From Phaeosaccion multiseriatum (lineage: Eukaryota; Protista; Ochrophyta, other classes): 64,000 nucleotides of DNA. Every line of letters begins with the position of its first letter. Positions within the stretch are counted from its first letter, which is position 1. The notes under the pieces are model-generated. The model was given only the letters and a program-made list of their open reading frames with translations. It was not told where the DNA came from and did no database searches. The DNA lies in NCBI GenBank assembly GCA_965112735.1, contig OZ218958.1:2046001-2110000 (forward strand). Direction: 5' to 3'. Of this stretch, positions 1,700 to 38,622 are shown one piece after another. The translations under genes and the position numbers were made by a program.

Positions 1700-2379
1700 C
1701 ATGAAGTGCCACTTCGCGCTGCTTTATCGAAACAATAAGAGGAACATGTCCTTCCGCCTTCCGCGGGAGGGACGGCTGGGCGCGCCCCGCCCCCGCCCCG
1801 CCCCTGGTGGCGCACCATATGCTTTTTTCTTTTCTTTTTCTTTTCACATTTCCCGAGGTTGCAAACCCTCGGCCCCGTGCACGCCTAGCGGTTTTGCTCT
1901 AGGCCGCTAGGCCGCTCGGCCTCCGGCCGCTCTAGGCCGCTCACTTTTCAGCCCTAGGCGGCCTATTCGACCCCTGACAAGGTTCTGGGTTCCAGGTTCT
2001 GGCCGGCGCCAGCCGGCCAGGTTCCAGGTTCTGGGGGAACGCCGTGTAATAAGGCAATGATGAGGCCAACGCTTCACCTCTCTCTCCCAGCCTCGTATTA
2101 CTTATATGAACACCAACTACACTTACGTTCCTCATGCTACCTTACTTCCCCCCCGCATGCCTCTGGCAAAACTCGCTGTACAGCAACTTGCGTTCCTCTT
2201 CATGTTCCACAGGTGCTTGAAGTCAGTATTATGTCAATGGCCCAGGTCCAAACATTTTTCTGTCTCGTTTTTGGATTTTTAAAAAAAAAATGCTAATAGA
2301 CAAGGCTGGCTGCCAGGCTTTGGGGTTGCTATAACCTTGTCCATGCGTCTAGTCCTATCCTAAGTGGAGAGCAACGTGA

Positions 2380-3504
2380 CTCTACACAATCGCGTACGAC
2401 AAGATTGAGAGTCGGGGTGATGACACGTCCGGGTATGAGCCAGGTTTTAGCAGCTTCAGGGGTGGAGGGGGGGGGCAGAGCAGCACGGCCACCCAGATCG
2501 TGCACCGAGAGGGAGATCTGGTCTACGTGAAGGCGGTGAATGGCTCGGGCAATGAGCTCTTCTTTGTGGTCCAGCGAAGAGAAGACGTGGAAAGAAAGCG
2601 AAGATGGGAAAGACAGTAGAGCCTTCACACCCGGGCGCGCGACATTTTGTCAAGGGCAGCGCTGGTGGGGATGAAGCAAAGCGTGGCTCCGTTGATGTGG
2701 TATACAGCTACACCCATGATGCAAGCGTGAACGTGGAGACGATTCACGGTGCGTTGACTTCGTTCGGCAACGCGACCTACCTGTACGAAGTGTGCTAAGT
2801 TCAGATAACGTCTTATTATCCTGAACCTCTAGTATTGCGCCCGGGCGGGGGGCGCAATACTAGAGGTTCAGGATAATAAGACGTTATCTGAACTTAGCAC
2901 AGAAGGCTTCTCAGTTGGGACGAAGGGAAAGTAAGAAAAGAGGGGCAAGAAGAAGGGAGGGAAGGGCCCCAGCGCTTTGTCAGCCCGCGCTGAAGTCGCC
3001 ACCACCAGCCCGAGCATGCAGTCACTTTTGACCAGACGCTTGATGCGCTTCACCATAACGGAGGAGGAGCATGGCAGCATCGTCAGCATTGTCAATGACT
3101 CAAGCAAAGACAATGCCGACAGGCAAAATCGAGGCTTACGCCAAGCAGAAACAGATGAGGAGGAGGAGGTCGCATCAGAAGGGGACGAGGACAGTGAAGA
3201 CGAAGGAGATGAGGAAAGCACACCTCATCAGCGCAAGCTGGGAGTTATGGTCAGCACGAGATCGTCCCGGGGCCGGTCGACAGGGGCGCCAGTGAGTTAC
3301 AGAGACTTGCACACCGGCAAGAAGAGGAGGGGAGGGACAGTGTGTGTGGTGTGCAGGCAGGACGTCACAGAGGAGCTTCCACACATGCTGCCATGTGATA
3401 CTGACGCGTGTGGTGGAGAGTATCACCTCGGGTGTCTGACGCCTCCTCTCACTGAGGTACCTGAGGGGGATTGGTTTTGTCCGGCGTGCCGCGAAGGGAA
3501 GTAG
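2380..3504 (+). pseudogene. Disrupted ORF ending in an intact C4HC3 PHD finger (transposon cargo or transposase C-terminus)
   Basis: PHD sequence CVVC...MLPCDTDACGGEYHLGCLTPPLTEVPEGDWFCPAC. Removing the 2791-2901 insertion plus one TSD puts ORF 2604 in frame with ORF 2977, leaving one TAA at 2932. A further frameshift lies near 2600. Confidence 0.7.
2791..2901. mobile_element. 111-bp perfect palindromic MITE with TGT...ACA ends and 4-bp TSD (Ginger-like architecture)
   Basis: 52-bp perfect arms (2791-2842, 2850-2901) around a 7-nt loop. GAAG is duplicated at 2787-2790 and 2902-2905. Confidence 0.88.
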
Positions 3505-3687
3505 GCTAGTAGGTTGGCGCGCGCGAAAGAACTCTGAACTCTCCATTATAAAATGTACATGGCGTACGCTATTTTGCGGTCCCAGCCACACACGATGGGC
3601 ACTCAGGGCTGGGCATCAGTCCCTCTTTCCCTCAGTCACCCCTAGCTAGGTACAAACTGTCAAAGAGCTGGGTCAGGTTCCAGGTTC

Positions 3688-3898
3688 TGAGCCACCTGGG
3701 ATGTGGGACAGACCACACACCCCAGACAACCAACAAGCAAGGGGCTTGTATCCTATGTTCAGCGTGTATTAGCCTCGCTTATCTATCTCTCAATTCCTAT
3801 CTATCCTCCTCCCGCGACATGCCGTTCATATGAGGTGCGCATTCCCCAACTGGCGACAATCCGGATTCGAACATACCAAGCACCTTTGAGACTCCACA
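3688..3898 (+). mobile_element. ~210-bp TG...CA element copy 2, nested in the 1967-4002 transposon
   Basis: 4-bp TSD GTTC at 3684-3687 and 3899-3902. It splits the CAGGTTCTGGCCGGCG motif that is intact at ~1993. Confidence 0.88.
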
Positions 3899-4181
3899 GT
3901 TCTGGCCGGCGCCAGCCGGCCGGGTTCCGATTTCCAGCCGGCTCCAGCCGGCCAGGTTCCAGGTTCTGGGCTGGCCTGTCTCAGAACCTTGTCAGGGGTC
4001 GAGCCTATAGCCCGCCTCTAGGCAGCCTCCCAGTGACCGTGGGCGCGTGCGTGGTGCCGCCCAGCCAGTGGGTAGCAGCACACCTGTAAGCCTGCACTCC
4101 TCGTAGGGCCAGCGAGGCGGAAAGACAACACGAACCAAGTCCTCCTCACTTATCCCATGCAATACATTTGCTTAAAACTGA

Positions 4182-4300
4182 CTACTCTTTGCACTCTGGG
4201 CACTCCCACCGTCCTCTCGGCCTGGAGCGAAGGCCGAGGCAACGAAGGTGGTACTCATTTCCACAGGTACCCTCGTTGTAGCAGACAATGATGATGTGGC
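4182..4300 (-). pseudogene. Second, truncated PHD finger remnant
   Basis: IVCYNEGTCGNEYHLRCLGLRSRPRGRWECPECKE*. The first CxxC pair is missing. Confidence 0.6.
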
Positions 4301-4599
4301 GCTGAGAGCAGAAGTGGTGGATCCCGGGGTGGAGGAAGGGAGGGCGAAGCGAGGTAGGTAGGGAGAGGCAGAAGAGTGAGGGGGAAAAGCATCTGTTTGA
4401 CCTATCATTTAACTTCAATCTCTCCTCTAGCTACGACACTTGGGCGGGTTCCGGGCCAGCCAGCCCAGGGGCATATGAGCATACTCCCGCCCTGGACCTG
4501 CGCCTAGTTGGCGTCTGCCCTAGACGGCCTATAAATAGGCCGCTAGGCCGGGCAATTTTTTGTCTTCTTTTTCTTTTCACGTTTCCCCATTGCCGACGG

Positions 4600-4803
4600 T
4601 GTGGAGTCTCAAAGGTGTTTGGTATGTTCGAATCCGGATTGTCGCCAGTTGGGGAACTCGAGCCTTATATGAACAGCATGTCGCAGGAGGAGGATAGATA
4701 AGAAAGAAATAAAAAAAGCTATACAAAACTCAACATAGGATACGAACGCTTTGCTTGTTGGTTGTCTGGAGCGTGTGGTCTGTCCCACATCCCAGGTGGC
4801 TCA
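4600..4803 (-). mobile_element. ~205-bp TG...CA element copy 3 (inverted)
   Basis: Reverse complement of 1218-1426. 4-bp TSD ACGG at 4596-4599 and 4804-4807. Confidence 0.88.
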
Positions 4804-4900
4804 ACGGCCCACCCCCCTCGACCTAGAGGTTTAGGATTGTGAAAAGTGCCCGTGCATGAAGTGCCACTTGCCGCTGCTTTATCGAAACAATAAGAGGAAC

Positions 4901-7900
4901 ATGAGGGACGGCTGGGCGGGGGGCGGTATCAATCGGGTGGGAGACAGTGATCACAAGAAGGTGTACATCAATGTGGCCGGTAGGGGCGTGCTTCCCGTCT
5001 TGCTTGCCGTTGATGTTGGTGTCAGCGTCTTTGTTCTCTTCGCAGCCGAGAAGTTTAGCGCAGCGGCCGTGAGCAGACAGGTACGAAAAGGAGCAAGCCC
5101 AGGGATGCTGAAAGCACTCCCGATTTTCCATTCCTTTGCTCTTGTACTGCTTGGAGTAGTGCTTTCCCTCATCACTCACAGCAACCCCCTCCCTGATTGC
5201 TCCGGCCCCTGCAGTGGCTGCACTACTCGTACTTTAATTCCTCTGCGGAGGTAATGGTGCTGTGTGCAGTGCGGTGCTTGCTGCTGCTGACCAGCGTGTT
5301 TCACCGACAGGGGTCGGTGGTGCACATCACCAAAGGCGGCCCGGTGCGAAGCTCGACATTGACGCGCATAAGCATTTGCTTCTCTCTGGTCTGTGGAGTG
5401 TACAGCATTGTCAAGATGATCCTCGGCTTAGCGTTCGGAAGCGCAGGGGGCTGGGCCGTGGCGGCCTGCTCCCTCACGTTTGCCGCGTGCGAGTACCTCT
5501 CTCTGATGAAGCTACGCGGAACGGTGCGGACCATTTCGAGTCAAATTCTCTACGATAAGTTGGTTGATGAAAACAGCCTGCGAGGCAACGACGAGGACAG
5601 GGAGGACGACGAGGAGTGGGCCAGGGAGAGGGAGGAGCAGAAATCGAAAAAGTCACTGACCCCGAGGGAGCTCCTAGGCGTCCTGAAGCCGTACTTTTGG
5701 CCCAAGGGGAGCGACGAGCGGGCCGTGATGAACAGGGTGCGGAGCACCACCACATGGTTCTGTGTCATTGCCTCCAAAGCCTGCTCCGTGTACAGCCCCT
5801 TCTTCCTCGCCGACGCCACCAACAACCTCTACAACGGACACGCGCAGCAGGCCAGCTACGACGTTGTGGGCTACGCCACACTCTCTTTCATGGCCAAAGC
5901 GCTCAAGGAGATGCAAAATCTTGTGTACCTTCGAGTCAAGCAGCAGGTACCGACCGATCGTTGCGGTTGACGCCCAACTCCCTCTCTATCTCAACACGTG
6001 TTCTTGTCTCCTCTGGTCCAATCTTTCTTTTCTCCACCTTTCCTCTCCCCTCTCTTTCTTGCTCTCGCTCACGATCGCTGACCTCTCTCGTTCTCTCCTT
6101 CATGCCTCTACCTCTCGCTTTCCCCTCTGTCGCTCTCTCTCTCCTTCTCTCTCTCTCTCTCTCTCAGGCATACGTCGAAATCGCCGAGCACACATTTTCT
6201 CACTTGCACCGTCTGAGCCTGTCCTGGCATTTGCGCAAGAAGATTGGGGGCGTGACCAGGATCATGGACAGGTAGGCGTACGTGTGTCTGACTCATCTCT
6301 TTGCAGCTGCAATTCTCACACGGAACCTAGGGAGGAAAGGAGTTGGTGTTGATGCCGTGTATTGACGTCGACTTGTTGCCTGAGCACCCTGCCTCCCCAC
6401 TGTCCAACCCCTGACACACCCATACACCTCCACAGGGGCACGGATGCGGCCAACAACCTGGTCACGTACCTCTTCCTCTACCTCGTTCCAGCCATAGGTG
6501 AATGCGTGTAAGTACTCGCATTCCCTCTGTACCCGATGCTCCCCAACATGCAGCATCACAACCCCATTGACCCGCCCCCCCCTCTTCTCTTGTCCCCGAC
6601 CGGCAGAGCCACGGTTATCATCTTCTACGTCAAGTTCAAGGATTGGAAGTTGGCCACAATGGCTTTTTGCTCACTTGTCCTCTATGGAGTCGTCACGGTG
6701 AGTGGCGAGTGGAGCGGGCGGCAGAGACCATCGAACGTGGGATCAGGCAGCAGCCGTTCCAATCAGCATGAGCCTGCCCCCCCCTCTCACTCACTCACTC
6801 ACTCACTGGCGCTTGCCCTGCCCCCTTGGCACAGGTGAAAATCACGCTGTGGCGGAAGAAATTCCGGTCGCTGACCAACAAACATGACAATGCCTTCCAC
6901 GACATGGCGTCTGACTCCATCATCAACTATGAAACTGTCAAGTACTTTACAAACGAGGAGTTTGAAGTCAAGCGCTATAGCCAGAGGTAAGAAGGGAGGA
7001 AGGAAGATGGCGTGCTTTCTTCTTCTTTTTCGCTCAGGGCGCTTGTCATCGAGCCCTTCCCTCCCTCCCCCCATCCACTGCCGTCCCGTCCTCCCCTGTC
7101 CCAAGTGTGGCAAAGTACCAGCGAGCGAGCACCTCCACCCAGAGCTCCCTCTCCATTCTCAACACATTGCAGCAGCTCATCCTCGCTCTCACGCTCATTG
7201 GAGGCCTCATCCTGGCCGCAAAGAGCGTGCAGAGGGGCACGTACAGCGTCGGTGACTTTGTCTCCGTCAACACGTACATGGTCAACCTCTTTACGCCCCT
7301 AAACTTCCTCGGAAGCGTGTACAATGTCATTGGTGAGTCAGTGTTGTGAGCGAGTGGGTGCTTGAGTGCCTGAGTGCCTGAGTGAGTGAGTGAGTGTTCA
7401 AGCCCGCGGTGGCGGGACAATCAATCGTACCGTAAAGAGGGCAGTGCAGCACCTCTCTAACCCCCTCCCTTCACTCCATCGCGATCCGATGCACGCTACT
7501 GCGCACACAACACAGTCCAAGCCTTTGTGGACATCCGAAACCTCTCGGAGCTGCTTGCCGAGTCGCCGGACATTGTAGACGAGAAGGGCGCCCCCGACCT
7601 CAGCCTGGGCTCCTCCTCCAAGGGAGTGCGTGTGTCATTCCGAGAGATTGACTTCTCGTACCCAGGGCAGGCATCCAACAGCGGCCTCAGAGGGGTGAAT
7701 ATTGAGATTGAGCCGGGCACTACGACCGCCATTGTCGGCCCCACAGGCGCAGGAAAGACGACAATCAGTCGCTTGCTGTTCCGCTTCTACGACCCCGTTC
7801 GTGGTGGCGTCTTTATCAACAACCAGAATATTCGGTGCGTTTTGCTTGAAGCAAAGGGGCGAGGGGGAGAGGGGGGGGGGGGGCATTAGATAGTATCGTC

Positions 7901-8919
7901 CCCACGTTCAGGGTTTGAGTACAGAGTTTATTTAATGCACACGGTGTGAGCAGTGTCTGTTTGACAACTTACACTCGCACTTGTCGCTGCGTTGGTATCT
8001 GACCACAGAACGCTGACGGCCAAGAGCGTGCGGCAAGCCATCGGAGTGGTGCCGCAGGACACCCCTCTCTTCAACGAGACCATCCTCTACAACGTGCGCT
8101 ACGGGAGGAGCGACGCCTCCATGGCGGAGGTGGAGGAGGCCTGCAGGTGAAAATGGATGCGAGTGCGAATACTGCTCCCTCCTTCCTTTGTCTTGCTTGC
8201 TTTGAGAGCAACGTGTGTCACCCTGACCCTGACCCCAACCTCCCCTTCCTCAACAGATCTGCTCAGATCTATGACTTCATTATGGGCCTGCCGGAGACGT
8301 GGGAGAGCCAGGTGGGAGAGCGGGGCCTCAAGCTCTCTGGAGGAGAGAAGCAGCGAGTGGCGGTGAGTGAGTAAGTAACCTGTCGGTCTGTCTGGTGTCC
8401 AGCGATGCTTACACCGAGCGAGAGAGAGGGAGAGTCTGCTTTCCCGGAAGAGTGTTCTAAACGCCGCTGCGTGTCTGCCCCTCTCCACGCACATTCTGCT
8501 CCGCCCAGATCGCCCGCTGTCTGCTCAAGAACCCTCCCATCGTGCTCCTGGATGAGGCGACATCGGCGTTGGATACGCGCACGGAGAAGGGCATTCAAGT
8601 GGCCCTCTCCGGCCTGCAGCAGAACAGAACAACCTTGGTGGTGGCTCACCGCCTCTCCACCATTCGCACGGCGGAGCAGATTGTCGTTCTGTCCAAGGGA
8701 CAGATCGTGGAGAGAGGCACACACAACGAGCTGGTCGCGGTGAAGGGCGGTGAGTATCAGCAGCTGTGGAACATGCAGCTGCACGAGGACGAAGAGAGAG
8801 AGAGGTTGGAGAGCGAGGCTACTGCCGCCGCCGCCGCCGCCGCCGCCGCCGCTGCAGACGGGGACAACGGAAAGCCAGACGCAGGGCAAGAGGAGAGCAA
8901 ATCAGGGCGAGTAGACTAG
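4901..8919 (+). CDS. ABCB half-transporter, ABCB6/HMT1/ATM-like, with an N-terminal extra TM domain (~11 exons)
   Basis: Motifs [35 protein letters not shown], Walker [39 protein letters not shown] and AHRLST. GT-AG introns join in frame. Start codon uncertain. Confidence 0.93.
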
Positions 8920-9026
8920 AGCAGCCCCCCCCCCCCCGTTTGTGGGCGGGAAGGTGATGTTTTCTGGCCCGACTGAAGGATACGATAGGTATGCATATGT
9001 AAGTATAAGTAAGAGATTAATGTACA

Positions 9027-11916
9027 TTATCTTCCCTGCGGGGCTCTCTCTCTATCGTATTTACGCGTTGCACCGCTTCCCTTCTCCTCCCTGCTCTTGG
9101 GCGGAGGGAAGCGCCTGGGTCTACCGCTGTGGCCAGCTCCCCACGGCTGCTGCCGAACGTCCTTCTCAAACCTCACCCCCCCGCCCCGTGCCGCGAAGGC
9201 CGCCATCCTGGCTCTAAGACTTGCTGCCGCCTTTTCCCCTCTGCTGGAGCGCTCCTTCAATGCGGTCATGCGCTTTTGGGCGGCGAAGAAGCCGTCGTAG
9301 ATCATGGCGCAATTGTCGCACACACGCACCCGTTCGTACATCTTGGTAGGGTGGATTCTTTTCATTCATTCATTCATTCAGAGAAAATATTGAGACAAGA
9401 AAGAGCGCAACGAAACGGCACAACACACACAACAAAGAGTCGTAAGAGTGCTGGAGGTATGATGGACCCTTGATTGATACTTCATTCAGCCCCTGACCCC
9501 CCCCCTTGGGGCACACACCCATCCACCTCTCTCTCTCACCTCCCGAGTACGTTCTCGTAGAGCAGCTCAATGCTGAGGCTCATGCCGGTGCTCTGGTCGG
9601 CGTTCTGCCTCAGGCCGCTGTTGAGCGACGTGTAGAGGGCGCAAGAGCGCTCCACAAGCATGGCGTGCAGCATGGAGCACCGCGCTCGACACGCAGAAGT
9701 CACAGCATCCTCCATCTCGCCCTCGCTCACTTCGCTCCACTCCTGGTGAGCGAAGAACGTGAGCAAGCAAGAGCGAAGCAAGGGTCAGGGAGTCGCTCTG
9801 TTGAAGTCCTTGCTTTTGGAACAAACAACAACAGTACCTGTTTGCTCGCGAGGTCGAGGAGTATCTGGAGCTCAGACGAGAAAGAGGGGAGGGTGGCGGT
9901 CGCGGGCAAGAAGTCATTCTCAATGCGCGCCTTCACCAGGGTCTTGAACGATGTGGTCTTGCTGGGCACGGAGAAGGAGGACTCGACCGAGCTCACCGGC
10001 AAGTGGCAGTAGTCTCCCCAGCAGGCACCGTAACCTCCGCATCCTCCTCCTCCTCCTCCTCCTCCTTCTCTTCCTCCTCCTCCTCCTCCTCCTCCTCCTC
10101 CTCCTCCTCCTCCTCCTCCTCCTCCTCCTCCTCCTCCTCCTCCTCCTCCTCCTCCTCCTCCTCCTCCTCCTCCTCCTCCTCCTCCTCCTCCTCCTCCTCC
10201 TCCTCCTCCTCCTCCTCCTCCTCCTCCTCCTCCTCCTCCTCCTCCTCCTCCTCCTCCTCCTCCTCCTCCTCCTCCTCCTCCTCCTCCTCCTCCTCCTCCT
10301 CCTCCTCCTCCTCCTCCTCCCGCTGCTGCTGCTGTGGTCGATAGTGCTGGCGCCGAGCTTGGGCGAAAGTCCCCTTCAGCAGGACAAATGGCCTGTGCTC
10401 TTTGTGCGCTGCAGCCTGTGTGTTTAAAGAGGAGCAAAAAACAAAGCGCGCGGACGAGTTAGGAGCAGACCCACCCACCCATCCATCCACCCATTGACAT
10501 AGTACGCCCACCTGGTCGAGCCATTGTGGTAGAAGTGGTCTTGAAGGGGGGCAGCAGCAGCGATGGAGCGTCTCCGGCGACGGTCAAGTTGCCCGACGGC
10601 GGTGCTGTTGCTGGCCGGTCCCCGAGTGTGTGCAGGGAGCGATTACAGTCCTGGGCGCTGTAGTAGTGGCCTCTGGGCTTGTTGGTGCGGCCAAAGCTCG
10701 TCTCCGTGTGCATGGCAAAGTGCTGTGTGAGGGTGCGCACGGGTGGCACCGTCCTGCCACGTGTCTTGCTGCTACTGCCCCCCAGGGCCCCCAATCGTAG
10801 CTGCTTGGTGGAGGAGCTCCTTTCCCAGAGCAGAGCGCCCTGCTCTGCTGCGGCGAACTCCACTGCTGAGCTACCAATCCTCGCCGGGTGAGAAGGAGCT
10901 TCTTGGCCGGGTGTCAGCATCGCAGCCGCTGCTGCTGCCGCCGGTGTTGCTGGCTCGCCGCTGACTGGAGAGCTACTGGGCGAATCCCTCTCCACGGCAG
11001 CGGACAGGGGTGTGGTGTCCTGTGGCTTGGCGCGACTCCTCTTGGTACGGTTGGCCACCACTCTTGGGGCACAAGGCGCCGTTACAATTTGGGGGGCGAA
11101 GAGCAGCAAAGGCTCCCCCGTGCCCGGCGTGAAAATATACTCCAGCACAATCCACACGATGGTCTGTCCCCCCTCCCGCTCCAGATGGTTCACCAGGTTC
11201 TTGGTTGAAGCCCTCATCACCCGGTGCAGGACTCCCGACGCTCGAGTCGCCCCCAGGTGTATCATGTCCTGCTCAAAGCACTCGCTAAATCCCGCCGCCT
11301 TTTCACCACTGTCCTGCCACTGCCCCTCGGGGTGTCGACCAGAGTGCTGCCTCAAGCTGGCCAACTCCTCCACCATCTTGATCGAGAGCGGCCACTCCTT
11401 GAGCTCATAGCTGGCAGAGCGATAGTCCACTGCCGCCACGCCTCGCGTCGTCCCCTGCCGCATCTCAAACGAGCTGTGGAACACGCCTGTCCCGTGGAAG
11501 GACCTCGGCTGGCAGTACGGCTGCAACAAAAGGACCTTCTCCAGCATATCGTGATTGTTCTTCCACGTCAAGGCCTCCATTTCCCCTACTGTTAGAAGCA
11601 CGGTCTCGATTCCGGTCTCGTGCTGTCTTCGGCAAATGCACACGTGTCCCTTCCTCCATCCCAGTCCGCGAATCGGGCAGGCCCCTTTGGCGCGTTTACA
11701 CGAAGCACTCATAATCTTGTCCCACTCCAGCAGGCCGTCACTTCGCTTCAAGACAACCCCACTCTTCGCAGCAGTCGTGAGCCAGCGTATCACGTGTCCG
11801 CCCGTAACTATTATACTCTCTGCAAGCCGTGTTCCCGACAGACATCTGTCTGCTCGGCCTGGCATCCATATATTTTCGAAGAACCACATCTGCGTAGCAC
11901 TCTCCTCCGCCTCCAT
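9027..11916 (-). CDS. Uncharacterised spliced protein with a long homopolymer tract and a C-terminal VCDNC motif
   Basis: A ~475-aa first exon plus 3 exons that join in frame at GT-AG sites. Segments CWGDYC, SFKTLVKARIE and MYERVRVCDNC look conserved. Confidence 0.65.
10042..10320. repeat. (TCC)n / (GGA)n trinucleotide tract, about 83 + 8 units
   Basis: Directly visible, with one TTCTCT interruption. Confidence 0.98.
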
Positions 11917-12438
11917 CTTGCTCTGCTCCCCTGGTGGCAAGATCAGCAAGATTGAGAGAAGAGGTCAAGGGCGTCTCTGTCGGGAAAATTGCCAAAAAAA
12001 AATACAGTTTCATTTTTTTGACCGCCACCGGAAAATTTGCAAAAAGGGGTGAAGGGTGGTGCAAGTTATAGACGTGTTCCTTCGTGTACAATGCGTCGGC
12101 TGCGGCCGCCTGAGTCCACAATGGGTGAGTGTGTCCTGGGCTCATGCGCAAGGCCCGTCTTGCTTGCTAACTCTCTCTTACGCTGGCTGTGTGTTCGTCT
12201 CTCTCAGGCACCGACCCGTACACCCTCGCCATTCTGCGAGGCCGACACCCTCGCTCCTTTCCATTACAGCAGTTCGATACTGATAGCTACATGTGCGTCA
12301 AGAGAAGTTCCAACCATGGGATACGCTCGGCTGCTGTCCTGACTATGCTTGCCTTCTCTCTTGCCTCTCTGCAGAAAAAAATCGTCGGAAAGACTGTTGA
12401 GTGTGGGAAGGGGCCATCGACTCGACTTCATTGTGAGT

Positions 12439-15400: not shown

Positions 15401-15840
15401 AGAGCAGCCTGCGCGACCCCTTCGACGCTCTGGAGGAGGCTCTGCTTGAGCCGTACACGGTGCAAGCGGTGCGTGAGGCGCTGCACAAGCAAGACATGAG
15501 CATCCTCGCTGCGCACAGGCACTCGGATCGCTTGCTCAAAGCCCAAGCCGAGTTGTCGGATCAGCAGCAGCAGCAGTTGGCGATACAACAGCAGCAACAG
15601 CAGCAGTTGGCGACGCAGCAGCAGCAGCAGCAGCAGCAGCAGGCCCAGCAGCAGAGGAGAAGCACGAACCTTTCTCCTCCTCGCGTCTCAGTGAGCTCCA
15701 GAGTAGGAGGCGGCGGCGGCAGGGGCAGCGGGGGCAGCGGCGGGAGCAGCAGCGGCAGCTGTGAGCAACACCACTTGGCAGCACTTGGTGACAAGCGCAC
15801 ATTGATTCCCGTCCAGGAGGAAGTTGGGGGCGGGGCATGA
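12439..15840 (+). CDS. Large uncharacterised low-complexity (Gly/Gln/Ser-rich) protein with a central globular domain
   Basis: Two long ORFs joined by a GT-AG intron at ~13710-13951 (MR|NSDAEAIGKW). Start uncertain. Confidence 0.7.
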
Positions 15841-17809: not shown

Positions 17810-17895
17810 TTCACGTGAATCATTTGTCGGCCTTCATCCACTTCTGGGTGGACCGGAGCACCAACGCACGTACATCACAAATCAATTCACAATTC

Positions 17896-17955
17896 TCGGC
17901 CCCTGACATGCTTCTAATCTAATCTGGCCTGTCTCAGAAGCATGTCAGGGGCCGA
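17896..17955. mobile_element. 60-bp minimal MITE of the TCG(A/G)CCCCTGAC family
   Basis: 20-bp perfect TIR TCGGCCCCTGACATGCTTCT. 6-bp TSD CAATTC at 17890-17895 and 17956-17961. Shares CTGGCCTGTCTCAGAA with the right end of 1967-4002. Confidence 0.88.
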
Positions 17956-18208
17956 CAATTCATTGCCCTCCTCACGCCCTCTCTGCGCGGAGGGGCATGC
18001 CGGTCCTGGCGCGAGTTCTCCCTTGTTCGGCAGCTGTCGCTTCGGCGGCCTCCGCCGTTCGGGGTCTACTTGGTTCTCCAATCGTGCATGCGTCCCCTGT
18101 CCTCTCCTCCCCATGACCCACTCGTTACGCACTTGCCCACACACACTTTCAATTTCCTATGAAGTCTGTATATACGACAATGCATTTACAGGTAATTCGT
18201 TGGCAGAG

Positions 18209-20829: not shown

Positions 20830-20940
20830 TCGCGTGCCGGCTAGGGATAATGCCGGTAACGCGCCAGCTGCTCCGGCGAACGCTGATAGCGTATCGGCTG
20901 ACGCCGGCAAAAGCGATAGCTCAAGAGCATCAGGGGTCGA
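20830..20940. mobile_element. Degenerate or partial copy of the TCGACCCCTGAC family
   Basis: Right TIR TCAGGGGTCGA at 20930-20940, preceded by decayed GCCGGC..GCGATAGC motifs. No left TIR found. Confidence 0.55.
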
Positions 20941-23024: not shown

Positions 23025-23254
23025 AAAAAAAACAAAACGAGTTACATTTCAACCTCGCCCCCCCCCCATGAAGCTACAACTGGCCCAGTGCTTTTCGACA
23101 GAGGCAGGGCGGGGGCTGGCGTGAAGTGAAAGGGTCGCCCCCAGCAGTCGCCACAGCAGTCGCCATAGGGCGGCGCTTCTGCCGCCCAAGAGGCCAGGGC
23201 GGCTGAAGGAGGTGACTTGAGGCCTGGGCGCGTGAGTCGCACATCCCATCCTCT

Positions 23255-24583: not shown

Positions 24584-24712
24584 GGTCAATCCAAATTGTG
24601 TCTCTTTCTTACTACTGTGGAGCTGTCTCTTGTTTTGACGGAAGATGAAAAACGATGAGGGGGGAACAGCTCAGTACGTGCGGATGGCACTGGAAGGCAT
24701 TCGTTGTCATTC

Positions 24713-24912
24713 TCGACCCCTGACGCACTATCTACGTACGCTATCCGCTATCGCCTTCGCCGGCGCCAGCCGGCTTTGGGGGGTGGGGGGGTTGTGGGGG
24801 CGTGCTATCCGCTATCGCCGGCGCCAGCCGATCCGCTATCCGCTATCGGCCGGCGGCCGATAGCGCGCTATCGAGAATGTAGGCGATAGTGTGTGTGTGT
24901 GGCAGGGGTCCA
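24713..24912. mobile_element. 200-bp MITE of the TCGACCCCTGAC family
   Basis: Left TIR intact, right TIR GGCAGGGGTCCA degenerate. TCATTC at 24707-24712 and 24914-24919. Internal CGCTATCGCCGGCGCCAGCCG repeats are shared with 38477-38622. Confidence 0.82.
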
Positions 24913-25084
24913 CTCATTCATCTCTCCATAGCCGAATTGGCCAGCTCTCTGCCACCACCGTTGCGTCAGCGGCCTGCTACCTGCTACTGCCGGTGGGTGT
25001 ATCCTCCCCAATCCTGCAATGCATATCACCACACTCTTCTAGTCAATAGTTTTTTTAAAGGAGGGGGTAGTAGGAAAGGAAATG

Positions 25085-26656
25085 TCAGTACTCGCCGGGC
25101 TGGTGCTGCATCTGGTGCTGCAGCTGTTGATGATGGTGGGGGTGCGACATCATGTGTTGTGGGTGGTGGTGCATTCCGTCGGGGTCGAGGGGGTGGTGCT
25201 GTTGATGCTCCTTGTGCATCTGATGCTGCTGGTGCATTTGATGCTGCTGCTGCCGTTCCACCTCCTGCTGATGCAGCAGCTGCTGCTGGCGCTCCACCTG
25301 TTGCTGATGCTGCTGCTGCAGTTGCAGCTGCATGGCGTTATCCTCATCCTCTTGGAGCTGAGGCAGGCCTGCGTTCCACTTCTCCATGGCTTCCTTATAT
25401 CGCTCTGCATCCTCCTTGAACTTGAGCTGGAAGGGGACCTTCTCCTCGGCCCCCATCTTCGACCATTCCTCCCCTAACTTCTTGCTGATATCTACATTCT
25501 TGGCCTCAGGCATTGCTTGCTTGAGTTCAGGCCGCCTCTCCTGGCTAAAGTGGAGAAAAGCAGACATGGCGCGTTTGGGGGCACGGGGGTCCTTCTTCTG
25601 CCTCTTGTTCGGCACCTTGAGCGGGCCGTCATACGACTCGAGCTCCGTCTCGTAGCGAGCCTTGTCCTCCAAGGCTTTGGCCTCCCACGGCTTTCGTGCC
25701 TCATCATCCAAGCTGCGCCACAGCTGCGCAATCACCTTCATGACTTCAGTCACCTGGGAGGGGGGCGTGGTTGCCGCGACATTCGTTCAGACACATACAG
25801 ATGCAGATGGTGAGATGAGCACAAGTCAGGCCAAAGCCTTTCATCAAGGCCGAGCTGCTCCCTTCAGCGTCCAGAGGCCCCGCACCTTCGCCTCGGGTGG
25901 CAGTTGGGTCTTCATTTCCTGCCGCTTCTCGATGGAGAAGAGTATGTACGCTGACATTCCCCTCTTGGGAGCACCAGGGGCTTTCTTGAGGGCCCTCTTC
26001 TTCCGTTTCCTGCCATCGCCTTCTCCTAAAGCATCCGCCTCGTGTTGTTGGTGTGGCTGCTGCTGCTGCTGCTGCTGTGATTGCTGCTGAAAGCGCTGCT
26101 GCTCCTCGAGATGCTGATGCTGCTGTTGCATTATTGCAACCATCTCGTGGTGGTGCTCATTATCATCTTCTTCTTCTTGTTGTTGTTGTTGTTGTTGTTG
26201 TTGGTGGTGGTGGTGTTCTTTTTCTTCTTGTCCTTCTTCTTCCTGTTCTTCTTCTTGTTCTTCTTCTCCTTTTTCTTGTTCTTGTTCTTCTTCTCGTTCT
26301 TGTTCTTCTTCTTGTTCTTGTGGTTGTTGTTGATCTGCGTAGCTGCCCATTTGTTGATCTGCGTAGTTGCCTATCTGCTGCTGCTGCTGGTACCCTTCGT
26401 GCTCGTCGTGCTGCTGCTCATGCCCTTGCTGCTGCGGCTTCTCATGTCGCTGCTGCTGCTGCTCATATCGCTTATGGTACCGCTGCTGCTCCTCGTGCTG
26501 CCCCTGCTCGAGCCGGTACTGCTGATAGTGACGGTGCCCCTCTTGCGGCGGCAGTTGCTGCGGCGGCAGCGACTGCTGTTTGTGCTGCTCCACGCAGGGC
26601 TGCTCCTTATCATACTCCCGGCCCTCTCCCTCCTCCCTCGGCTGCTGCTCCGTCAT
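25085..26656 (-). CDS. Two-HMG-box protein with Gln/Glu/His-rich termini
   Basis: KKAPGAPKRGMSAYILFS and KKDPRAPKRAMSAFLHFS boxes. One intron at ~25865-25754. Confidence 0.93.
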
Positions 26657-26837
26657 TCTCCAAGCACGAAAGTCGCTCGTGAAGAAAGGTTGGTTCTTTC
26701 GATGGCACTTCACGCGCAGCCCTCTTGACTTCCGGCCTCGCAGGCGAGAGGCAAACGTTGTATTACCCCGTGGCAGGAAAACGGTTTGGGGGGGGGGGGA
26801 GGGGCGCTGGTATCCCTTATCGATCGACGGGCGATCG

Positions 26838-30267
<3,430 letters not shown>

Positions 30268-30594
30268 AGGTAGAAAGGAAGGCCCCTCATCATCCTCTGC
30301 CCTTCCTTGGGTGGCCATCGGGGCTTCGAGCCCCCCAGCCTGTGTTAACATACTCTGCCCGCGGCGTGACCAGAAAAAGAAGCGGGCACCTCTCGCTGCT
30401 TCTGAGTCACAGTCGCCCTGAGCGTACACGCAAGCAGCACTGTACTTGTTGAGATTAGAGTCCTCTTTAGAGCCCAGCTTCTCCTCAACCTTGCGGTGCT
30501 CTTTCCTCAGGGCCGAGAGACTTGTGAGTCATTCAATTCACCACTAAAACGATAACGGAGAGAATTGACGCATCACCCACGCCAGACGGGCCGA

Positions 30595-33500
30595 TCAAAA
30601 CACTTCTGTCTGCAGCTGGAGCGTCCGCAGCAGCTGCACGATCAAGGCTTCGCCGCCCGCCCCCAGACTGGAGCCCGCTCCTCCAGTCATGGGGGGGTTG
30701 ATCCAATCTGGCAGGCTCAGAGCCCTCACGGAGCTCGAAATCCCCACACGCGCAGAATCCTTGCCCAGCGCTTGCCGCAGCAAGAGCCACACGGCATCGC
30801 CATCGAGCCTCAGGAGCTGCTGAAGTAAGTCGGTAGCGAGGATGACAATCTCAGTTCGCGCCTCCCCAACGCTCGCGGCAGTGATGAATGGCAAGGCTAA
30901 CAAAGCTGCGTCGCGTGCTAGCGGCACCATGAAGCGCTGACAAGCCTCGCTCTCGCTCAAAGCCGTCACGCAGCGAATGAGAGCGGCCACAATCTTATCA
31001 TCCACTCCTTTGAAAGGCTGGCTCGGAAACGTGGTCTGTGCTTCCGCCTCATCGATGGCACCTGGACCACGCCCAGGCCTCTCGCGGGAGTGAGACAGGC
31101 GTTTTCGCTGGATGGCGGCCCGGTTCCTCTCCAAGAGGACTCGGAGCAGCGGCCACAGCTCTTCCGTCACCTTGAGCGACAGAAAGTCCCCGCAAAGCTC
31201 CACCAGCGTCTCCAGCGTGAGCAGCAAATGAAGCAACACAGCCTTCCGAGCATCGAGCGACTCCCCTCCCTCCTCCGACAACGGCTCCTCCCCGCTGGTC
31301 GCCAAAACCAACCCTCTCCGGGAGTGGTAAGGGGGGCTGCCCTCCGCATGGATACCCCCGCCTCGCAAGGACACCGGGCTGGCATGATCTCTAAACCTCG
31401 CCAGCATGCTGGGCCACGCCTGAGCAGAGGAAAAGTGGACAAGTGCCGAGGCGAAGCAAGGGTCAAACCTAACCCTGATTACAGGCGCGTACAAGGTAGA
31501 AAAATGCTCTCCTCCCTCCCTACCTGATGCACACTGGTGAGCAAGACAGTGTCGACTCTAGTCTCGGCGAGGCGCTGGAAGCACGTGCGCATGACCGATA
31601 ACGTCATGGCTTGTATCCGCAGCCGAGGCGTGGCCAGCATGTAGCAGCAACGCTTCAGCACCTCCTTGATGGCCTTGACTTCCTTTGCCTCGCAAATGTC
31701 CCTTTCCCGCTTCTCATCGGCAGTCTCCTCCCCCTCCTGTGCCTCGCTCGAATCTCCATCCTCTTTGTCAGCGGGATGCGCTCCTCTCTTCACCGACTCC
31801 TCCCCCCTTTCCTGCACGTGCAAGACATCACTCGGCGATGCGCATTCGGTGCAGAGCTGCAAAAACCATTCGCTCTTTCGGAGACATTGCGGCCTCTTCG
31901 CATCATCCTTGGGGACGTCAGCCTCAGCTGTCGCTTCGTCATGCGCATGAACAGAGGAGGGGGGCAAAGGCCGAGACGAAGACCCCCGTGGGTGCTCAGT
32001 CGACTTGTGACCACCACCCTCCCCATCGCCCTCTTTGACAGGCATGGTCGTGGCATTGACCAGGGCGGACAGGACCCTCAGGTTGGGCTCCTCAGCATTC
32101 ATGTCCCACTTGAAAGAGTCCACCTGACGCAGCACGGCGGTCGTCAAATCGTGCACGACTGGAAAGGGGGGGGGGGTTGGGGTGACTGTTAAAGGTTTGG
32201 GGAGCAAAAGGTAGCCTGCCTGACACGCATTCCCCGCGAAGAGAGCCGCTGACCGAAACGCCTGTGCCTGTAGGTGCTTTGCTCCGCTCACTCACCTGGC
32301 GTGGGGGCGCTTGCATCGCTGTAGCGCAGCACCGCGGCGAGAACCGCAGACACACGCAGCGCATCGTCCCCGGACCCCATAAGCCCTGTCCTGCTATGTG
32401 TATGTCCGGCACAAGGGTACACAACAGAACAAAGTCGGGGACGGGAGAAATGCGTCACGACAGAACGGTCACGAGCAAAGCAGCAGCACCACCCACTACC
32501 CCCTAACGCCTTACCTCCTGCGTGCTCGGCGGCTGCTACTGACTGCACCTAACGAGTTCATGTGCAGAAGGGCCGCGTCCACTATGTAGTCCATATTCTG
32601 CGCAAGGAGACGTGGGACACCGTCCTCTTTCCCTCCCCCTCCTTGGAAATGCCCCGAGGAGCCCTGCGATGAAGCAAAGACCTGCAAAGTGACGAGAGCG
32701 GCGCCTCGGACAAATGGGTGCGGGTCTGCCAGCTTGGTCAGCAGAGGATAGATAGCTTGTTGCAGCAACGCCTCCGACAAGGGCGAGGCCGGACGACGCC
32801 AGTCCTGCGGGCAGCAGCAGCGAGGCAGGTTTGGGGGGGCAGCGAGCGCATCATGTAAATGTTCCCCGCCAAGGAGGCAAAACTAGCGCTTGTAGCCAGA
32901 CCCCCTCCCTTCTCACCTTGAGTGTGCCGACTACTTCCAAGAGCAGAGCCGTCAGCGTTGCCTGGCCTTGCAGCACATCCCGGGAGGACGACGCAAGATT
33001 CTCATCTCCCGGTCCTCCCTCATCCCTTCCCTGCCTTTTGGAGAGGGTCTGGGTGCTGCTCGCTCTCCATGCCACCGCCTCCTTTGCCAGCCCCCCACCC
33101 TCTGCTGGTGCTTTTATTTCCCCAGGAGTCAGAGAGGTGGGCAGCGTCCAAGCCGTACAGTGCAGCACCCGGTCCAAGATGGCCAATGCCTGCTCCTCTG
33201 GAAACGCGTCGAGGGAGTCACTCCCCCCCTCGACACCTCTGAGAAGCTCGGCAATAATGTAGGCCACGGCCTGACCTTTCCGCAGCCACAAAAGTCGCTG
33301 CTGCACTCCGCTCGCGAGCGTCGACTCCCCCTCACTTGCCCCTCCGCGTGCTCCTCTCCGTCCGCTTCTCGGCAGCACCTCAGGCGGTCTTGTCGTCACT
33401 TGTCTCAAGAGGCGTTCCACAAAGGCCCAGAAAGACGCCCTGCCGCTGGTGCTGCTCCCTCCGCCCTGCCTTCCCAGCGCATGGAGCATCTTCTTCGCAG

Positions 33501-35763
33501 ACTGAAGCGTAGCGTCATCGCTGCACAGTCGGAAGGTGGAAATGGCAAGTGGTCAGAAGGAGAGTTCGAGTACACACCATCACAACAAAAAAAGCACCGT
33601 GGCACTTCACGCACCGGATGTGGGAGAAGATGCGGCGTGGATACCGCGAGTAGAGCTTTGCTCGCTCAGACGGCGCTCCCTCTCCGTTGTTACGGCCGCT
33701 GCTGCTGCTGCTGCTGCCGCTGCTGCTGCTGCTGCAGATGGGCTCAGGGTTTCCAAGCTCCGCTGAGAGGGACGCGCTGGAACCACTGTATGTGGCACGA
33801 GGGGCAAGAGTCATTCCCGTGACAAGGGGCTGGAAAGGGTCCAGCTCGAACGCCAAGCAGAGGCAAGCGATAAGCGCCGGCGAGTGGGCGTCGAGAAGGA
33901 TCAAGGTGTCCGGTCCGAGCAGACGGAGATACCCGCCGAGCAGATTGAAGCTTCCCCGCAAATTCCGCTCGTTGGCCGACAGAGCCACCGAAGGGAGAGA
34001 CTGGAACCCCTTCAACGCCCTCTGCCAAGACAGGAAGGAAGGAAGGAAGGAAGGACGGAAGGAGAGCACATGAGGGGCACGTGTGCGCACATTTTGGAAG
34101 ACCCCCTGGGTCCCGGGGCTGACCCTCTCACCTCCACCAGACTGCTGCGCACTGTGAGCCAGGCGAGGGCTCCGAGAGACTCCCTGTACAGCTCGAGACC
34201 TTGCGCGGCGGACATCGAGACGGCGTCCTGTTCGTCCACTTGCAGGCCTAGAGTTGGTCCGAGACAGGAAAAAGGGAAAGAAAGGAGGTCAGGGGGGGGG
34301 GCGATGCGAGGGCAGACACGAAGATTCTCGTGTCTTCTTACCAATGAGGGTCTCAAGCAAGACGAGCGCGATGGGCTTGACGGACTCCCCGCAGGTGAGG
34401 AGGACATCTTGGCTCATCGCAGAGAGGGCTAACCGCACCTTCCATGATGGGTGGTGTCTGTCACGTGAAAGGGAAAAGAGGAACGAGGAACGAACTCTTT
34501 GAGAAAGTTCTGCATTTCGAACGCAAAATAATGCTCGCACCTTCTCACCTGCACTGTGTCGCAATGGGGGGCATGAGCACCACGAGCTTCTCCATAGCCG
34601 CGGCGACCCACGCATCTCCACTGCCATCCTTTGCATCTAGGTGGAGGGGTGCTGCTGCTACCCCAACATTGGCGTTGGCCTGCTTGGCAAGATGCAGCAG
34701 CATATGCATGGGCTTTTCTTCCTCTGCTGCGGCCGGCAGTGGCGGTGCTTGTGGCCGCTTGTCGCTTGCGAGGCACACCACAACGAGGCGGTGTAACATG
34801 ACAAGCGCCGCCTCCACCTCCTTTTCTCGTCGGCGTGCCCCACCCCCCCCCTTCAAGACCTGGTCATCAAGCACAAGCACACTCTGAGTTAGGTACTGGA
34901 ACAAACATGCCTCAAACGCAAGACCACACACCGTCGTTTACCTTGAAGAGAGCGCTGAACACGCCAGGGAAGAAACTCCTCCACAATTTCTTGTCGTCGG
35001 AGAGCAGCTCTAGTAACCCCCTGCCGAGTTGCAGGCTGGACAGACGAGACGCACCATCCCCAAACCCCTCAGCGACGTCCATCGAGGACTGCACGAGCTG
35101 GGCCAGCAGCCCTCCGCCGTACGCCGCTGACAGTGACGCCTTGACCTCGCCCCAGAGCAAACACAAGGCATCCACATGCTGTGTTAGGCAAGAGCCAGGG
35201 GTAGAGACCTCCCCTGCACATCGGAGGATGGCCTTAACACACATCAGGCAAGCGTCCAGCAGACCCTCCGCCTGCGCCGACGTACTCGACTTGGTACCCT
35301 GCGCGTCCTTCACTCCGAGCTCGCTGATGATCAGGATCAGCCCGTAGAGGAGCCGCGTCACCTCTTGTGGCCCTGCCGCCTGAGAAGAATGGACTGAGTC
35401 ATTCTCCACGAGATACGCCCCACAAGTACCCACATAGTCCGTGAGGAAGCGCACGGACATCTCCTTCACTCTCACTGGCATGTTTGCTTTGGCTGACATG
35501 ATGATCGACAACGGCAACAGGACCTGGCCCCGAACTCCTGCTGCAACTGACCCACACACCGGCGACGGGCCCGTATCTGCTGCGGAGGCCCCTGTCGTTC
35601 CCAGCTCCGACAACTTTTCTCGAAGGCCTACAAAGCATTGGTTTAACTCCTTTTCAAGACCTTCCACATCGCTCTTCTTCGCCGGGGAGCATGAGTGATA
35701 ACGCTGAAGATGGGTCATCAACTGGACGCATGTCTCCACGACCTGCGACGTCCAGAGCTTCAT
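30595..35763 (-). CDS. TTI1: TELO2-interacting protein 1 (TTT complex HEAT-repeat subunit)
   Basis: FFPGVFSAL, HPSWKVR, YPLLTKLADP...VRGAA...LLAQNMDYIVD, LL.SVHQAWP and LCGDFL...LWP, a motif order typical of TTI1. Exon boundaries approximate. Confidence 0.82.
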
Positions 35764-35923
35764 TTCTTATTATACCTTTACAAGGTGGTGCTTCGGGCTG
35801 CGCCCTCGGCAGGGAGAGGGAGAGGGAGAGGGAGAAATGTACTTCAAGTGTTGTGTGAAGAACCAACACACACAGAAGGAGGGAAGATATGGATGTCCTC
35901 CCAATAATCCACCCTGGCCCTCC

Positions 35924-36152
35924 ATGCCTACGGAAGAGCAGGAGGATGATATCGACTATGAGGACCAAAGGATTAAGGTGGGGGGGCATGCATTCGACGT
36001 GATTACTATATCCAACGAGTCTCTCCCGCTGGAGCTCCTCCTCCAATTGGAAACTGAACACCGCGAGATCTCTGGCCAGGTAGGCACAAAACCCATCTGC
36101 TGTATCTCTCGGCATCGTGTGACAACCTTGTCACGCTTCCCTCCTCCTCCTC

Positions 36153-36188
<36 letters not shown>

Positions 36189-36956
36189 CTCCTGCTGCTT
36201 CTCCTGCTGCTCCCGCCCTGTTCTGCTCCTCAGCGCTTGTGGGAGGGTTCCTTGCTCTTGGGTCAGTTCCTGACTTCAGCGTCTCCGGCCGCACTAATAC
36301 GTGGGGCGTCCGTCCTAGAACTCGGAGCAGGTGTGTCTTTAAAGGTACCATCTTCATCTTTCATCCTCCAATTACTTCGAAGTACTTTCTAAATTGCTCG
36401 ACTGTGGGACCCACGAGTAGGAACGGGCGTCTGCAGTCTTCTCTGCTCTTCCCTCGGAGCAGCGGTGGCAATTGCGACTGATGGAGATGAGTCTTGTATA
36501 AAAATGATGGACAAGAACATTATCAAGAATGGGCTGAGTGGCACATGCTGCTCTTCGTTGCTTCGATGGGGAGAAGAAGAGACGTACGACTCCGTGAGGG
36601 CCGTATGTGGGAGAATGGGCACTCCTGCTCCACCCTTTCAAGTGATAATAGCGGGCGATGTGCTCTACAAGGCAGACTTGGTCCAGCCACTCTTGGAGAC
36701 GGTCGCGGAGTTCCTGGCGCCTGGGGGGTCCATGTATCTGTGCCACATACCAAGGGCGGGAGTCAGCCATGCCTCCGTGCAGGGGAGTATGGAAGACATG
36801 GGCTTCTCCTTTGTGGAAGAGGCCGTCAGTGCACTCGGGATTGACTTTGCATTGTGTGAGGATGATGTGAACAGAGCAAAAATCTATAAAATAGGTACTG
36901 GGGCAGCAGCAGGCATGAGTGTGGCCGAGGGAGGGGGGAAAGGAAGCTTTTCTTAA
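35924..36956 (+). CDS. METTL21/EEF2KMT-type (Methyltransf_16) protein lysine methyltransferase, 3 exons
   Basis: SGQ|RLWEGS, VLELGAG|TG, ATDGD, LRWG and IIAGDVLY. Confidence 0.9.
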
Positions 36957-37504
36957 AGTGCCGGAAGCCGTTTCGAGCACGGTTCTGCCTGATTCTCTCC
37001 TCCACCTGAGGTGGGGAGGGATTGCAGACAGCACATTTCGTATCCTAAATTCTCCATCACAAGCACATGCCCCCCCCTTCAGAACCTCAGCAACTACGTG
37101 ACGACGAAAAAGCCGGACAAAGCCTTTCCAACTCACGTAAGAGAGCGCATTACCTAGTGCTCCCATTTTTCGGTCGAAGGACGCCGGTTGAACTGCATCC
37201 TATGCTCCATCCACGAGGCCCCCTGGGTAGCCAGCTACCCTTGGGAGAGGCTCGCGGAGGCGGCGGGCGGGTCGGAGGAAACCAAATGTGCTCCGCTATT
37301 GTAGCTCAAAGCGCCCTACAGGCAGCGACCTGCTGCCTGGCTCCTCTCGGGTGCTGGGCTATCTATCTGGTGGTGCAGGGCTGCTGCGTGTTCCGTCCCA
37401 CCTGCCGTTCCAGCTGTGGATACCCACTCTGTCTGTGGGCGAGCTTGTTCCTGACTGAAGAGCTCCCAGCAAACGTGTGTGTCATGAGACAAGAGAAATA
37501 TGCG

Positions 37505-38220
37505 TCACCTTCTCCCGCCAGCGCTGTTGGCAAAGCCCGCACGCACACCATAGTATGTCGCCATGAGGCCAAATCCAGCCGCGCCCCCCAACGCTGCTGG
37601 CTTCAGCCCAGCTGTGGACTTGAACATCAAGCCCGACAAAGTGGCCGCTATACAAGGATTGGCGAATTCAGCCTCTCCGAAGAACCGATCCACTTCATTG
37701 GCATCCAATACGTGCTCCGCACACGTGTAGAAGAGCGCCAGAATGCCGCCGCTGTTACCCAGCCGAGAGCCTCTTTTCCCCGACGAATTCATCACACTAT
37801 TCAGCACCACCCGAAACTTGCCGGAAGGTGCCTTTCTTCGTCCCTCTTGAATCCCATACAGCCCTCCCAATGCAATACCTGGCGTCGTAAGAGAACGGAA
37901 CAGGTTGGGGGGGGGGGTGGAGAAAGATGGCGAGAAATCATCAGCGCGACCACCCCTCATCCAGCTTCTCCCCGTGCCGCGTTACCTGCAACATAGCTAG
38001 CTCCGCAATTATACGTTGATTTCGCGAACAAATCACGCTCCTTGACGTCGTAATTCAAGTACTCTGGCTCGTTGTTACCCCCCTGTACTCCCATGGCCGG
38101 AGCCACAGTCCTCAAGTCGATGTTCGTATTCAAGTTTGGCAGCTTCAGACCGCCGAATTGGCCGGCAGGGTCGCTATACTTGTCCTCCTGAGGAGACCCC
38201 TCTTCCGCATTGGTCGCCAT
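37505..38220 (-). CDS. TIM23: Mitochondrial inner-membrane translocase Tim23
   Basis: PEYL, YNCGASY, LNSVMNSSGKRGSRLGNS.GILA and GLMFKSTAG. The 3' end may include another exon. Confidence 0.9.
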
Positions 38221-38339
38221 CTCCCCCCCTCTTCCTCTTATGCTACGGGCACCAAAAAATAAAGAAAGCTGTGCGGCGGCGGACAAGCAAGTGAGATCGA
38301 GTTGTTAAAAGTTCCCACCCCCTTCTCTTCGGTGTTGTA

Positions 38340-38411
38340 TCTCTGCTATCGCCGGCGCCAGCCGGCGTGCTATATAATATTATCGGGCCCTGCAAGTACG
38401 TCAGGGGTCGA
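38340..38411. mobile_element. Partial copy (right end) of the TCGACCCCTGAC family
   Basis: GCTATCGCCGGCGCCAGCCGG followed by GTCAGGGGTCGA. Confidence 0.65.
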
Positions 38412-38476
38412 GTACTTGGAAATGTGCGGGTAATAATCGAAGACTCCACGCGAAGGTCTGCAGCCCGGTGAAAGCG

Positions 38477-38622
38477 TCGACCCCTGACACACTATCCGCT
38501 ATCGCCGGTGCGCTATCAGCTATCACCGGCGCTAGCCGGCGCGCTATCCGCTATCGCCGGCGCCAGCCGATCCGCCGATAGCGCGCTATCGAGAATGTGG
38601 GCGATAGTGCGTCAGGGGTCGA
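38477..38622. mobile_element. 146-bp MITE of the TCGACCCCTGAC family
   Basis: TIRs TCGACCCCTGAC(A/G)CACTATC. 6-bp TSD AAAGCG at 38471-38476 and 38623-38628. Confidence 0.92.

Follow-up and report, generated by a model that had tools for sequence, protein, structure and literature searches.

The question raised by this locus is what kind of mobile element has left a set of short sequences with inverted ends in the genome of the alga Phaeosaccion multiseriatum. The DNA analyzed, in the following referred to as the window, is a stretch of 64 kb from one genome of this species (contig OZ218958.1 of assembly GCA_965112735.1, positions 2,046,001–2,110,000, forward strand). An initial annotation had described therein a non-autonomous family with terminal inverted repeats (TIRs) and target-site duplications (TSDs) of 6 bp, and had assigned it to a superfamily that is either new or little described and in which the PHD finger is a product of the autonomous element. 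The first part of this description holds, as no transposase is encoded in the copies and four of them are flanked by exact 6-bp TSDs; the second part, in the form given, is unlikely. The family, from a sparsely sampled algal lineage, is real, multi-copy and uncommon in its signature, yet it belongs to the ordinary kind of miniature inverted-repeat transposable elements (MITEs). Very probably, the copies are non-autonomous cut-and-paste DNA transposons of this heterokont alga which are moved in trans by an enzyme encoded elsewhere.

Identification and Structure of the Copies

Ends were counted with a 12-nt end pattern allowing at most one mismatch, and the expected number as well as 100 shuffled sequences served as control. 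The window contains 12 matches versus 1.16 expected, a count that was reached in none of the 100 shuffles. A total of eight family members was counted in the 64 kb, seven of which are given here with their coordinates:

1967–4002, plus strand: longest copy, 2036 bp, subfamily A; perfect 21-nt inverted ends (1967–1987, 3982–4002); TSD GCCTAT (1961–1966, 4003–4008)
17896–17955, plus strand: 60-bp copy, subfamily A; perfect 20-nt inverted ends; TSD CAATTC (17890–17895, 17956–17961)
20856–20940, minus strand: truncated copy, subfamily B; end with one mismatch and sub-terminal region; partner end not found
24713–24912, plus strand: older 200-bp copy, subfamily B; right end decayed, with a (TG)n run in front of it; TSD TCATTC (24707–24712, 24914–24919) with an offset of one base
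about 38344–38411, plus strand: truncated copy, subfamily B; internal motif and exact right end (38400–38411), left end missing
38477–38622, plus strand: 146-bp copy, subfamily B; ends perfect over 12 positions and paired at 21 of the first 25; TSD AAAGCG (38471–38476, 38623–38628)
45122–45174, plus strand: decayed 53-bp copy; right end (45163–45174) with one mismatch, of the left end the first bases only; TSD CAGTAC (45116–45121, 45175–45180)

The copies of 2 kb, 60, 146, and 200 bp had already been delimited in the initial annotation, and their positions, ends and TSDs, including the one-base offset of the 200-bp copy, could be read directly from the sequence. The 53-bp copy is additional to these four and provides a further independent 6-bp TSD. 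Two right-end fragments had been reported as well. The one at 38400–38411 is indeed an exact right end and belongs to a truncated copy, but the internal sequence adjoining the one at 20929–20940 corresponds, in reverse orientation, to the 200-bp copy's left sub-terminal region, which identifies it as the left-type end of a minus-strand copy that is truncated.

For verification of the TSDs, the longest direct repeat abutting both ends of a copy was determined by script, and random position pairs of the window were used as control. The TSD is exactly 6 bp long in four copies (1967–4002, 17896–17955, 38477–38622, and 45122–45174), while in the fifth (24713–24912) it is shifted by one base; in every copy with an exact TSD the longest flanking direct repeat comprises exactly 6 bases. 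A match of all six flanking bases occurs by chance with an empirical frequency of 4.4e-4 in this window. All intact copies end with TC..GA. Letter counts over ten ends revealed that the outer 12 positions are shared by 8–10 of the 10, positions 13–15 by 3–5 of the 10, and the deeper positions, unevenly, by 3–9 of the 10. Perfect ends and TSDs in three copies, together with the decay of the others, point to activity that was spread over time.

An interpretation of the copies as introners, i.e., intron-generating elements, was dropped, as their ends do not resemble splice sites in either orientation. The one-mismatch end matches at 9486 and 21225 have neither a partner end nor a duplication and are taken as chance matches, being within expectation. 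A large bounded element extending from the weak end at 9486 to the end at 20940 was considered and rejected, since its flanks mismatch. At a distance of 80 bp from the 53-bp copy lies a foldback element (45258–45612) with 171-nt arms, which are 98% complementary, and a 13-nt spacer; this repeat may reach from about 45240 to 45655.

Subfamilies and Sub-terminal Motifs

The family consists of two subfamilies, A and B, which have diverged in their interiors and carry different short sub-terminal repeats; within each subfamily the interiors are related. Common to both are the ends and a GC-rich 14-nt motif, GCCGGCGCCAGCCG, with eight matches in the window versus 0.08 expected, all of them in or beside family members and seven in element-forward orientation. 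Subfamily A comprises the 2-kb and the 60-bp copy. In these two copies, and nowhere else in the window, the 16-nt string CTGGCCTGTCTCAGAA adjoins the right end. Both motifs had been named before as the link between copies of differing interior, which is borne out by their distribution. Runs of CAGGTTC are a further characteristic of subfamily A, seven of the eight occurrences in the window being located in the terminal regions of the 2-kb copy.

Subfamily B includes the copies of 146 and 200 bp together with the two truncated ones. Its typical hexamer, GCTATC or GATAGC, is found 30 times in the window, 18 of these within 569 bp of subfamily-B sequence, mostly in forward orientation on the left side and inverted near the right end. 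The sub-terminal regions of the 146-bp copy (38477–38622) contain CTATC seven times and GATAG twice. Transposase binding sites are commonly arranged as arrays of short repeats near the ends, and by analogy the repeats of A and B may serve as putative binding sites of the enzyme that moves these copies.

Coding Capacity and the Cargo of the 2-kb Copy

Protein domains such as those of transposases and integrases were sought with Pfam in the open reading frames (ORFs) of the window with at least 150 amino acids, in the following the window ORFs, and the cargo frames of the 2-kb copy were searched each on its own. Neither in the copies nor in the window ORFs was a transposase or integrase domain found. 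The five copies of 53–200 bp are non-coding, and the sole domain of the 2-kb copy is a PHD finger, which occurs in one of the eight family members. The 2-kb copy contains the following features:

2036–3669, plus strand: cargo between two partial sub-terminal units; several short frames in different phases; the PHD finger is the sole Pfam match
2791–2901, no strand assigned: perfect palindrome of 111 bp in the cargo; 52-nt arms, 7-nt spacer, GAAG on either side; single-copy in the window
2935–3504, plus strand: open frame of 189 codons with the PHD finger at its end (about 3343–3489; PF00628, E 6.6e-9); no transposase domain
3688–3898, plus strand: nested, unrelated dispersed repeat of ~210 bp which splits the right sub-terminal unit; GTTCTG on either side; 86–90% identity to 1218–1426 and 4600–4803

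Direct copies of one ~50-nt sub-terminal unit with 88–97% identity are present in both terminal regions. Because this unit stands at both sides, the copy looks like a short backbone which is split by ~1.6 kb of other DNA (2036–3669). The palindrome at 2791–2901 probably entered as a small insertion of its own; a tiny foldback element and an assembly artefact are both conceivable. The dispersed repeat is represented by three copies in total (1218–1426 and 3688–3898 on the plus strand, 4600–4803 on the minus strand), in which neither ARAGORN nor Rfam called a tRNA.

The origin of the PHD finger was traced by protein searches with the 189-codon frame. A word-indexed search yielded three weak matches, all restricted to the PHD finger. 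An exhaustive phmmer search gave 2032 matches, none below 1e-30 and nearly all on the finger alone; the top ten are multi-PHD proteins, of which one additionally has a methyl-CpG-binding domain and none a transposase domain. Two overlapping frames upstream of the PHD frame, in other phases, have no domain match. The DNA 180 bp past the right end of the 2-kb copy encodes a second, partial PHD finger of the host (4185–4418, minus strand; PF23011, E 8.9e-9). It is no recent source of the cargo, as the two fingers share only 55% identity over 29 residues. Comparisons of the cargo with the rest of the window by tblastn and tblastx detected solely the C-terminal half of this second finger (4185–4265).

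Since the PHD finger occurs in one copy only, related proteins have PHD fingers but no transposase domain and the cargo is bracketed by partial backbone units, a captured passenger gene fragment is the simpler and more likely reading, although the frame may be the remnant of an accessory gene of the element. As in Pack-MULEs and in GingerRoot elements with gene fragments, a gene-like stretch that is not needed for movement would be enclosed in a short backbone with intact ends; Pack-MULEs differ by their 9-bp TSD, and the capture is in our case presumed. In annotation, the PHD frame should be checked before it is taken for a host gene.

The 2-kb copy is situated at the center of an imperfect palindrome of CTAGGCCGC-like units (1880–1966, 4003–4030), and a related, near-perfect palindrome was noted at 4520–4548 (region 4510–4550). 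These units may be the ends of another repeat family.

Search for Relatives

The pattern of left end plus GCCGGCGCCAGCCG gave zero matches in collections of viral, metagenome and prokaryote genome sequences. A 20-mer of subfamily B was detected at 16 metagenome loci and one viral locus; none of the 17 carries the ends, and these are chance matches in GC-rich DNA. Two-ended patterns of the 146-bp and the 60-bp type had no match in viral contigs. Altogether 2.9 million viral contigs were covered in four scans, and apart from the single end-less 20-mer locus they contain no match to the ends or motifs of the family. Among ~65 kb from the related algae Chrysoparadoxa, Phaeothamnion, Ectocarpus sp. 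13, and Scytosiphon no exact end was present, and one unpaired one-mismatch match corresponds to the chance level. An ORF of the window, looked up by exact match in public assemblies, yielded no record.

The curated repeat library of Ectocarpus lists no family with a 6-bp TSD or with TC..GA 12-nt ends (PMC12477816, supplement 3). The end strings are also absent from the Ectocarpus FASTA supplements, which is weak evidence, as one of the files is truncated and the lines are wrapped. A full-text literature search for the end strings returned unrelated primers only.

Proposed Mode of Transposition

Because no transposase is encoded in the copies or found in the window ORFs, we regard the copies as non-autonomous and as moved in trans. 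The enzyme would recognize the common 12-nt ends and probably also the short sub-terminal repeats and the 14-nt GC-rich motif. It would join the element into a target that is cut with a stagger of 6 bases, and repair of the gaps would leave the 6-bp TSD; the target would be chosen without sequence specificity. The 2-kb copy may have been formed from a small backbone that received ~1.6 kb of foreign DNA with a PHD gene fragment and was subsequently hit by two nested insertions.

Several observations weigh against this explanation. An autonomous partner was found neither among the window ORFs nor in the collections searched, and both the mobilization in trans and the class of the enzyme are inferred. 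No unfilled site was obtained for any copy of the family. The evidence derives from 64 kb of a single genome, and no other sequence searched contained a copy. As regards the cargo, a parent gene was not found in the window nor a close relative in protein collections, so that capture is not demonstrated, and the uninterrupted PHD frame of 189 codons would also fit a retained gene of the element.

Within these bounds, the family provides a handle for finding the full-length partner in the source genome, which could extend the diversity known for integrase-type transposons. With eight members in 64 kb, all located near exons, it is dense and belongs in the repeat library used for annotating this genome.

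Affiliation to Known Transposon Groups

A transposon superfamily is defined by its transposase. As no transposase was found in the window or recovered from any collection, the superfamily cannot be assigned from the window. Few DNA transposons have TSDs of 6 bp, a length that suggests a small set of enzymes, mostly relatives of retroviral integrases. Since the TSD length depends on enzyme geometry, the best candidate, albeit no more than a guess, is an integrase-like enzyme, a class that covers both the IS3EU-like and the Polinton-like origins treated below. The family shares its TSD length with the integrase-type groups and with Dada, but departs from each of them in at least one other defining feature. 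In hAT transposons in general the TSD comprises 8 bp, against 6 bp in the present family. The length of 8 bp is also given for the hAT families of Ectocarpus (PMC12477816, supplement 3).

The copies could be partners of an integrase-type (rve-like DDE) transposon of the IS3EU, GingerRoot or Ginger2 groups, from a lineage with atypical ends. We consider this origin doubtful, though not far-fetched. The 6-bp TSD, rare among transposons, is typical of this group (PMC6839031, PMC10045372). GingerRoot elements, which likewise have TIRs and show no preference for a target sequence, are frequently loaded with captured pieces of genes (PMC6839031), which also seems to be the case for the 2-kb copy, and no target preference was seen for the Phaeosaccion family either. 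The ends, however, disagree. In complete IS3EU families the ends are TA..TA without exception and the TSD is usually 6 bp long (PMC10045372), and GingerRoot ends are TA..TA or occasionally TG..CA with TIRs of 100–150 bp, whereas the family has TC..GA ends and TIRs of 12–21 nt. Moreover, the integrase of such an element was not found among the window ORFs.

Rather unlikely is the possibility that the copies are miniature partners of an undescribed integrase-type, or otherwise new, transposon lineage of heterokont algae, characterized by 6-bp TSDs, TC..GA ends and short TIRs. If this were true, the full-length element, possibly with a chromatin-reading PHD protein, would represent either a novel superfamily or a novel deep branch within one. 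Similar in general appearance are the families classified as ‘DNA/Unknown’ in Ectocarpus. They are short, TIR-bounded and non-coding, reside in gene-rich heterokont DNA and are likewise classed by their ends and TSD length; they differ in that none has a 6-bp TSD or the ends of this family (PMC12477816, supplement 3) and in that they derive from a different algal lineage.

The proposal of the initial annotation goes further, as it assumes a new or poorly described superfamily with an autonomous element encoding the PHD finger, of which the 2-kb copy would be a deletion derivative that retained the PHD gene. We judge it quite unlikely. Its starting point is sound: the signatures given for IS3EU (TA..TA) and Polinton (AG at the ends) agree with the literature, and the TC..GA ends indeed fit neither IS3EU/GingerRoot nor Polinton (PMC10045372, PMC6839031). 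The combination of 6-bp TSD, TC..GA ends and short TIRs matches no superfamily signature in three publications (PMC10045372, PMC6839031, PMC3706591) nor a family of the curated Ectocarpus library, and the PHD frame is unbroken. On the other hand, no transposase was seen, and a superfamily is not established by ends and TSD length. The PHD finger is confined to one of eight members and is without close relatives; its best matches are multi-PHD proteins of host type, and the frames upstream of it are out of phase and devoid of domain matches. The 2-kb copy furthermore holds the nested dispersed repeat and the palindrome, and the unrelated-looking PHD exon of the host lies 180 bp away.

Miniature derivatives of a Polinton/Maverick or of a polinton-like endogenous virus, which would borrow its retroviral-type integrase, are very unlikely. 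Such integrases typically leave 6-bp TSDs, and Polintons and polinton-like viruses possess these TSDs together with AG ends (PMC10045372, PMC6839031, PMC12220804). TIRs and the occurrence in protists, in whose genomes elements of this type are abundant (PMC12220804), are further points of agreement. Yet Polintons measure 14–40 kb, encode polymerase, capsid and integrase and have ends beginning with AG and TIRs of hundreds of bases (PMC6839031, PMC12220804). Domains of polymerase, capsid and integrase were not found among the window ORFs, nor were ends and TIRs of this kind in the window, and the scan of the 2.9 million viral contigs described above likewise gives no support.

Membership in the Dada superfamily is extremely improbable. 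Its TSD length of 6–7 bp would fit, and one family, Dada-1, exists in the related alga Ectocarpus (PMC3706591, PMC12477816). Dada elements, in contrast, have no TIRs but short sub-terminal inverted repeats only, and insert exclusively in tRNA and snRNA genes (PMC3706591), whereas the family possesses perfect inverted repeats of 20–21 nt and other targets; ARAGORN and Rfam detected no small-RNA gene in the whole window. Finally, an origin by chance, or from a palindromic motif that does not move (a regulatory site, for instance), is a negligible explanation, which would account for the two unpaired near-matches out of 12 (9486 and 21225) but neither for an end count that none of the 100 shuffles reached, nor for four independent exact 6-bp flank repeats at ~4e-4 each, nor for the related interiors within each subfamily.

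Genomic Surroundings and Other Repeats

The window is gene-rich nuclear DNA with ~57% G+C. Exons in it were assigned to a proteasome alpha subunit, to proteins resembling actin and TBP, to an HMG-box protein, an M24 peptidase, a tyrosine phosphatase, TTI1 and a lysine methyltransferase, and to PAS and WW proteins. For the proteasome exon, the best relatives come from Phaeothamnion (70%), Ectocarpus (69%), and Scytosiphon (68%), followed by Nannochloropsis and oomycetes with ~60%; the relatives of the tyrosine phosphatase are heterokont (ochrophyte), too. Every family member is located within ~0.6 kb of a coding exon, which is no sign of a preference, as the whole window is gene-dense.

A second, unrelated MITE of 248 bp (1452–1699) has inverted repeats of 92 nt (99% identity) and a 9-bp TSD, CATGAAGTG (1443–1451, 1700–1708), and a paralogous unfilled site exists near 4855–4863. 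The TSD length suggests a Mutator-like partner for this element. Because of its 9-bp TSD, the duplication of 6 bp is specific for the family and not a property of the region.

The end of the window is occupied by a satellite array (60039–64000) of at least 21 units of 177 bp, which are ~94% alike and show signs of a higher-order period of 354 bp; it reaches the window end and may be subtelomeric or pericentric. A frame of 1445 codons on the minus strand (52358–56695) is A/E/Q-rich and coiled-coil-like and includes five tandem repeats of 441 bp (53934–55997) with 97–98% identity. At about 10040–10330 a long CCT/GAG run corresponds to more than 100 residues of poly-glutamate on the minus strand, and many other CAG/GAG runs are found in the ORFs of the window.

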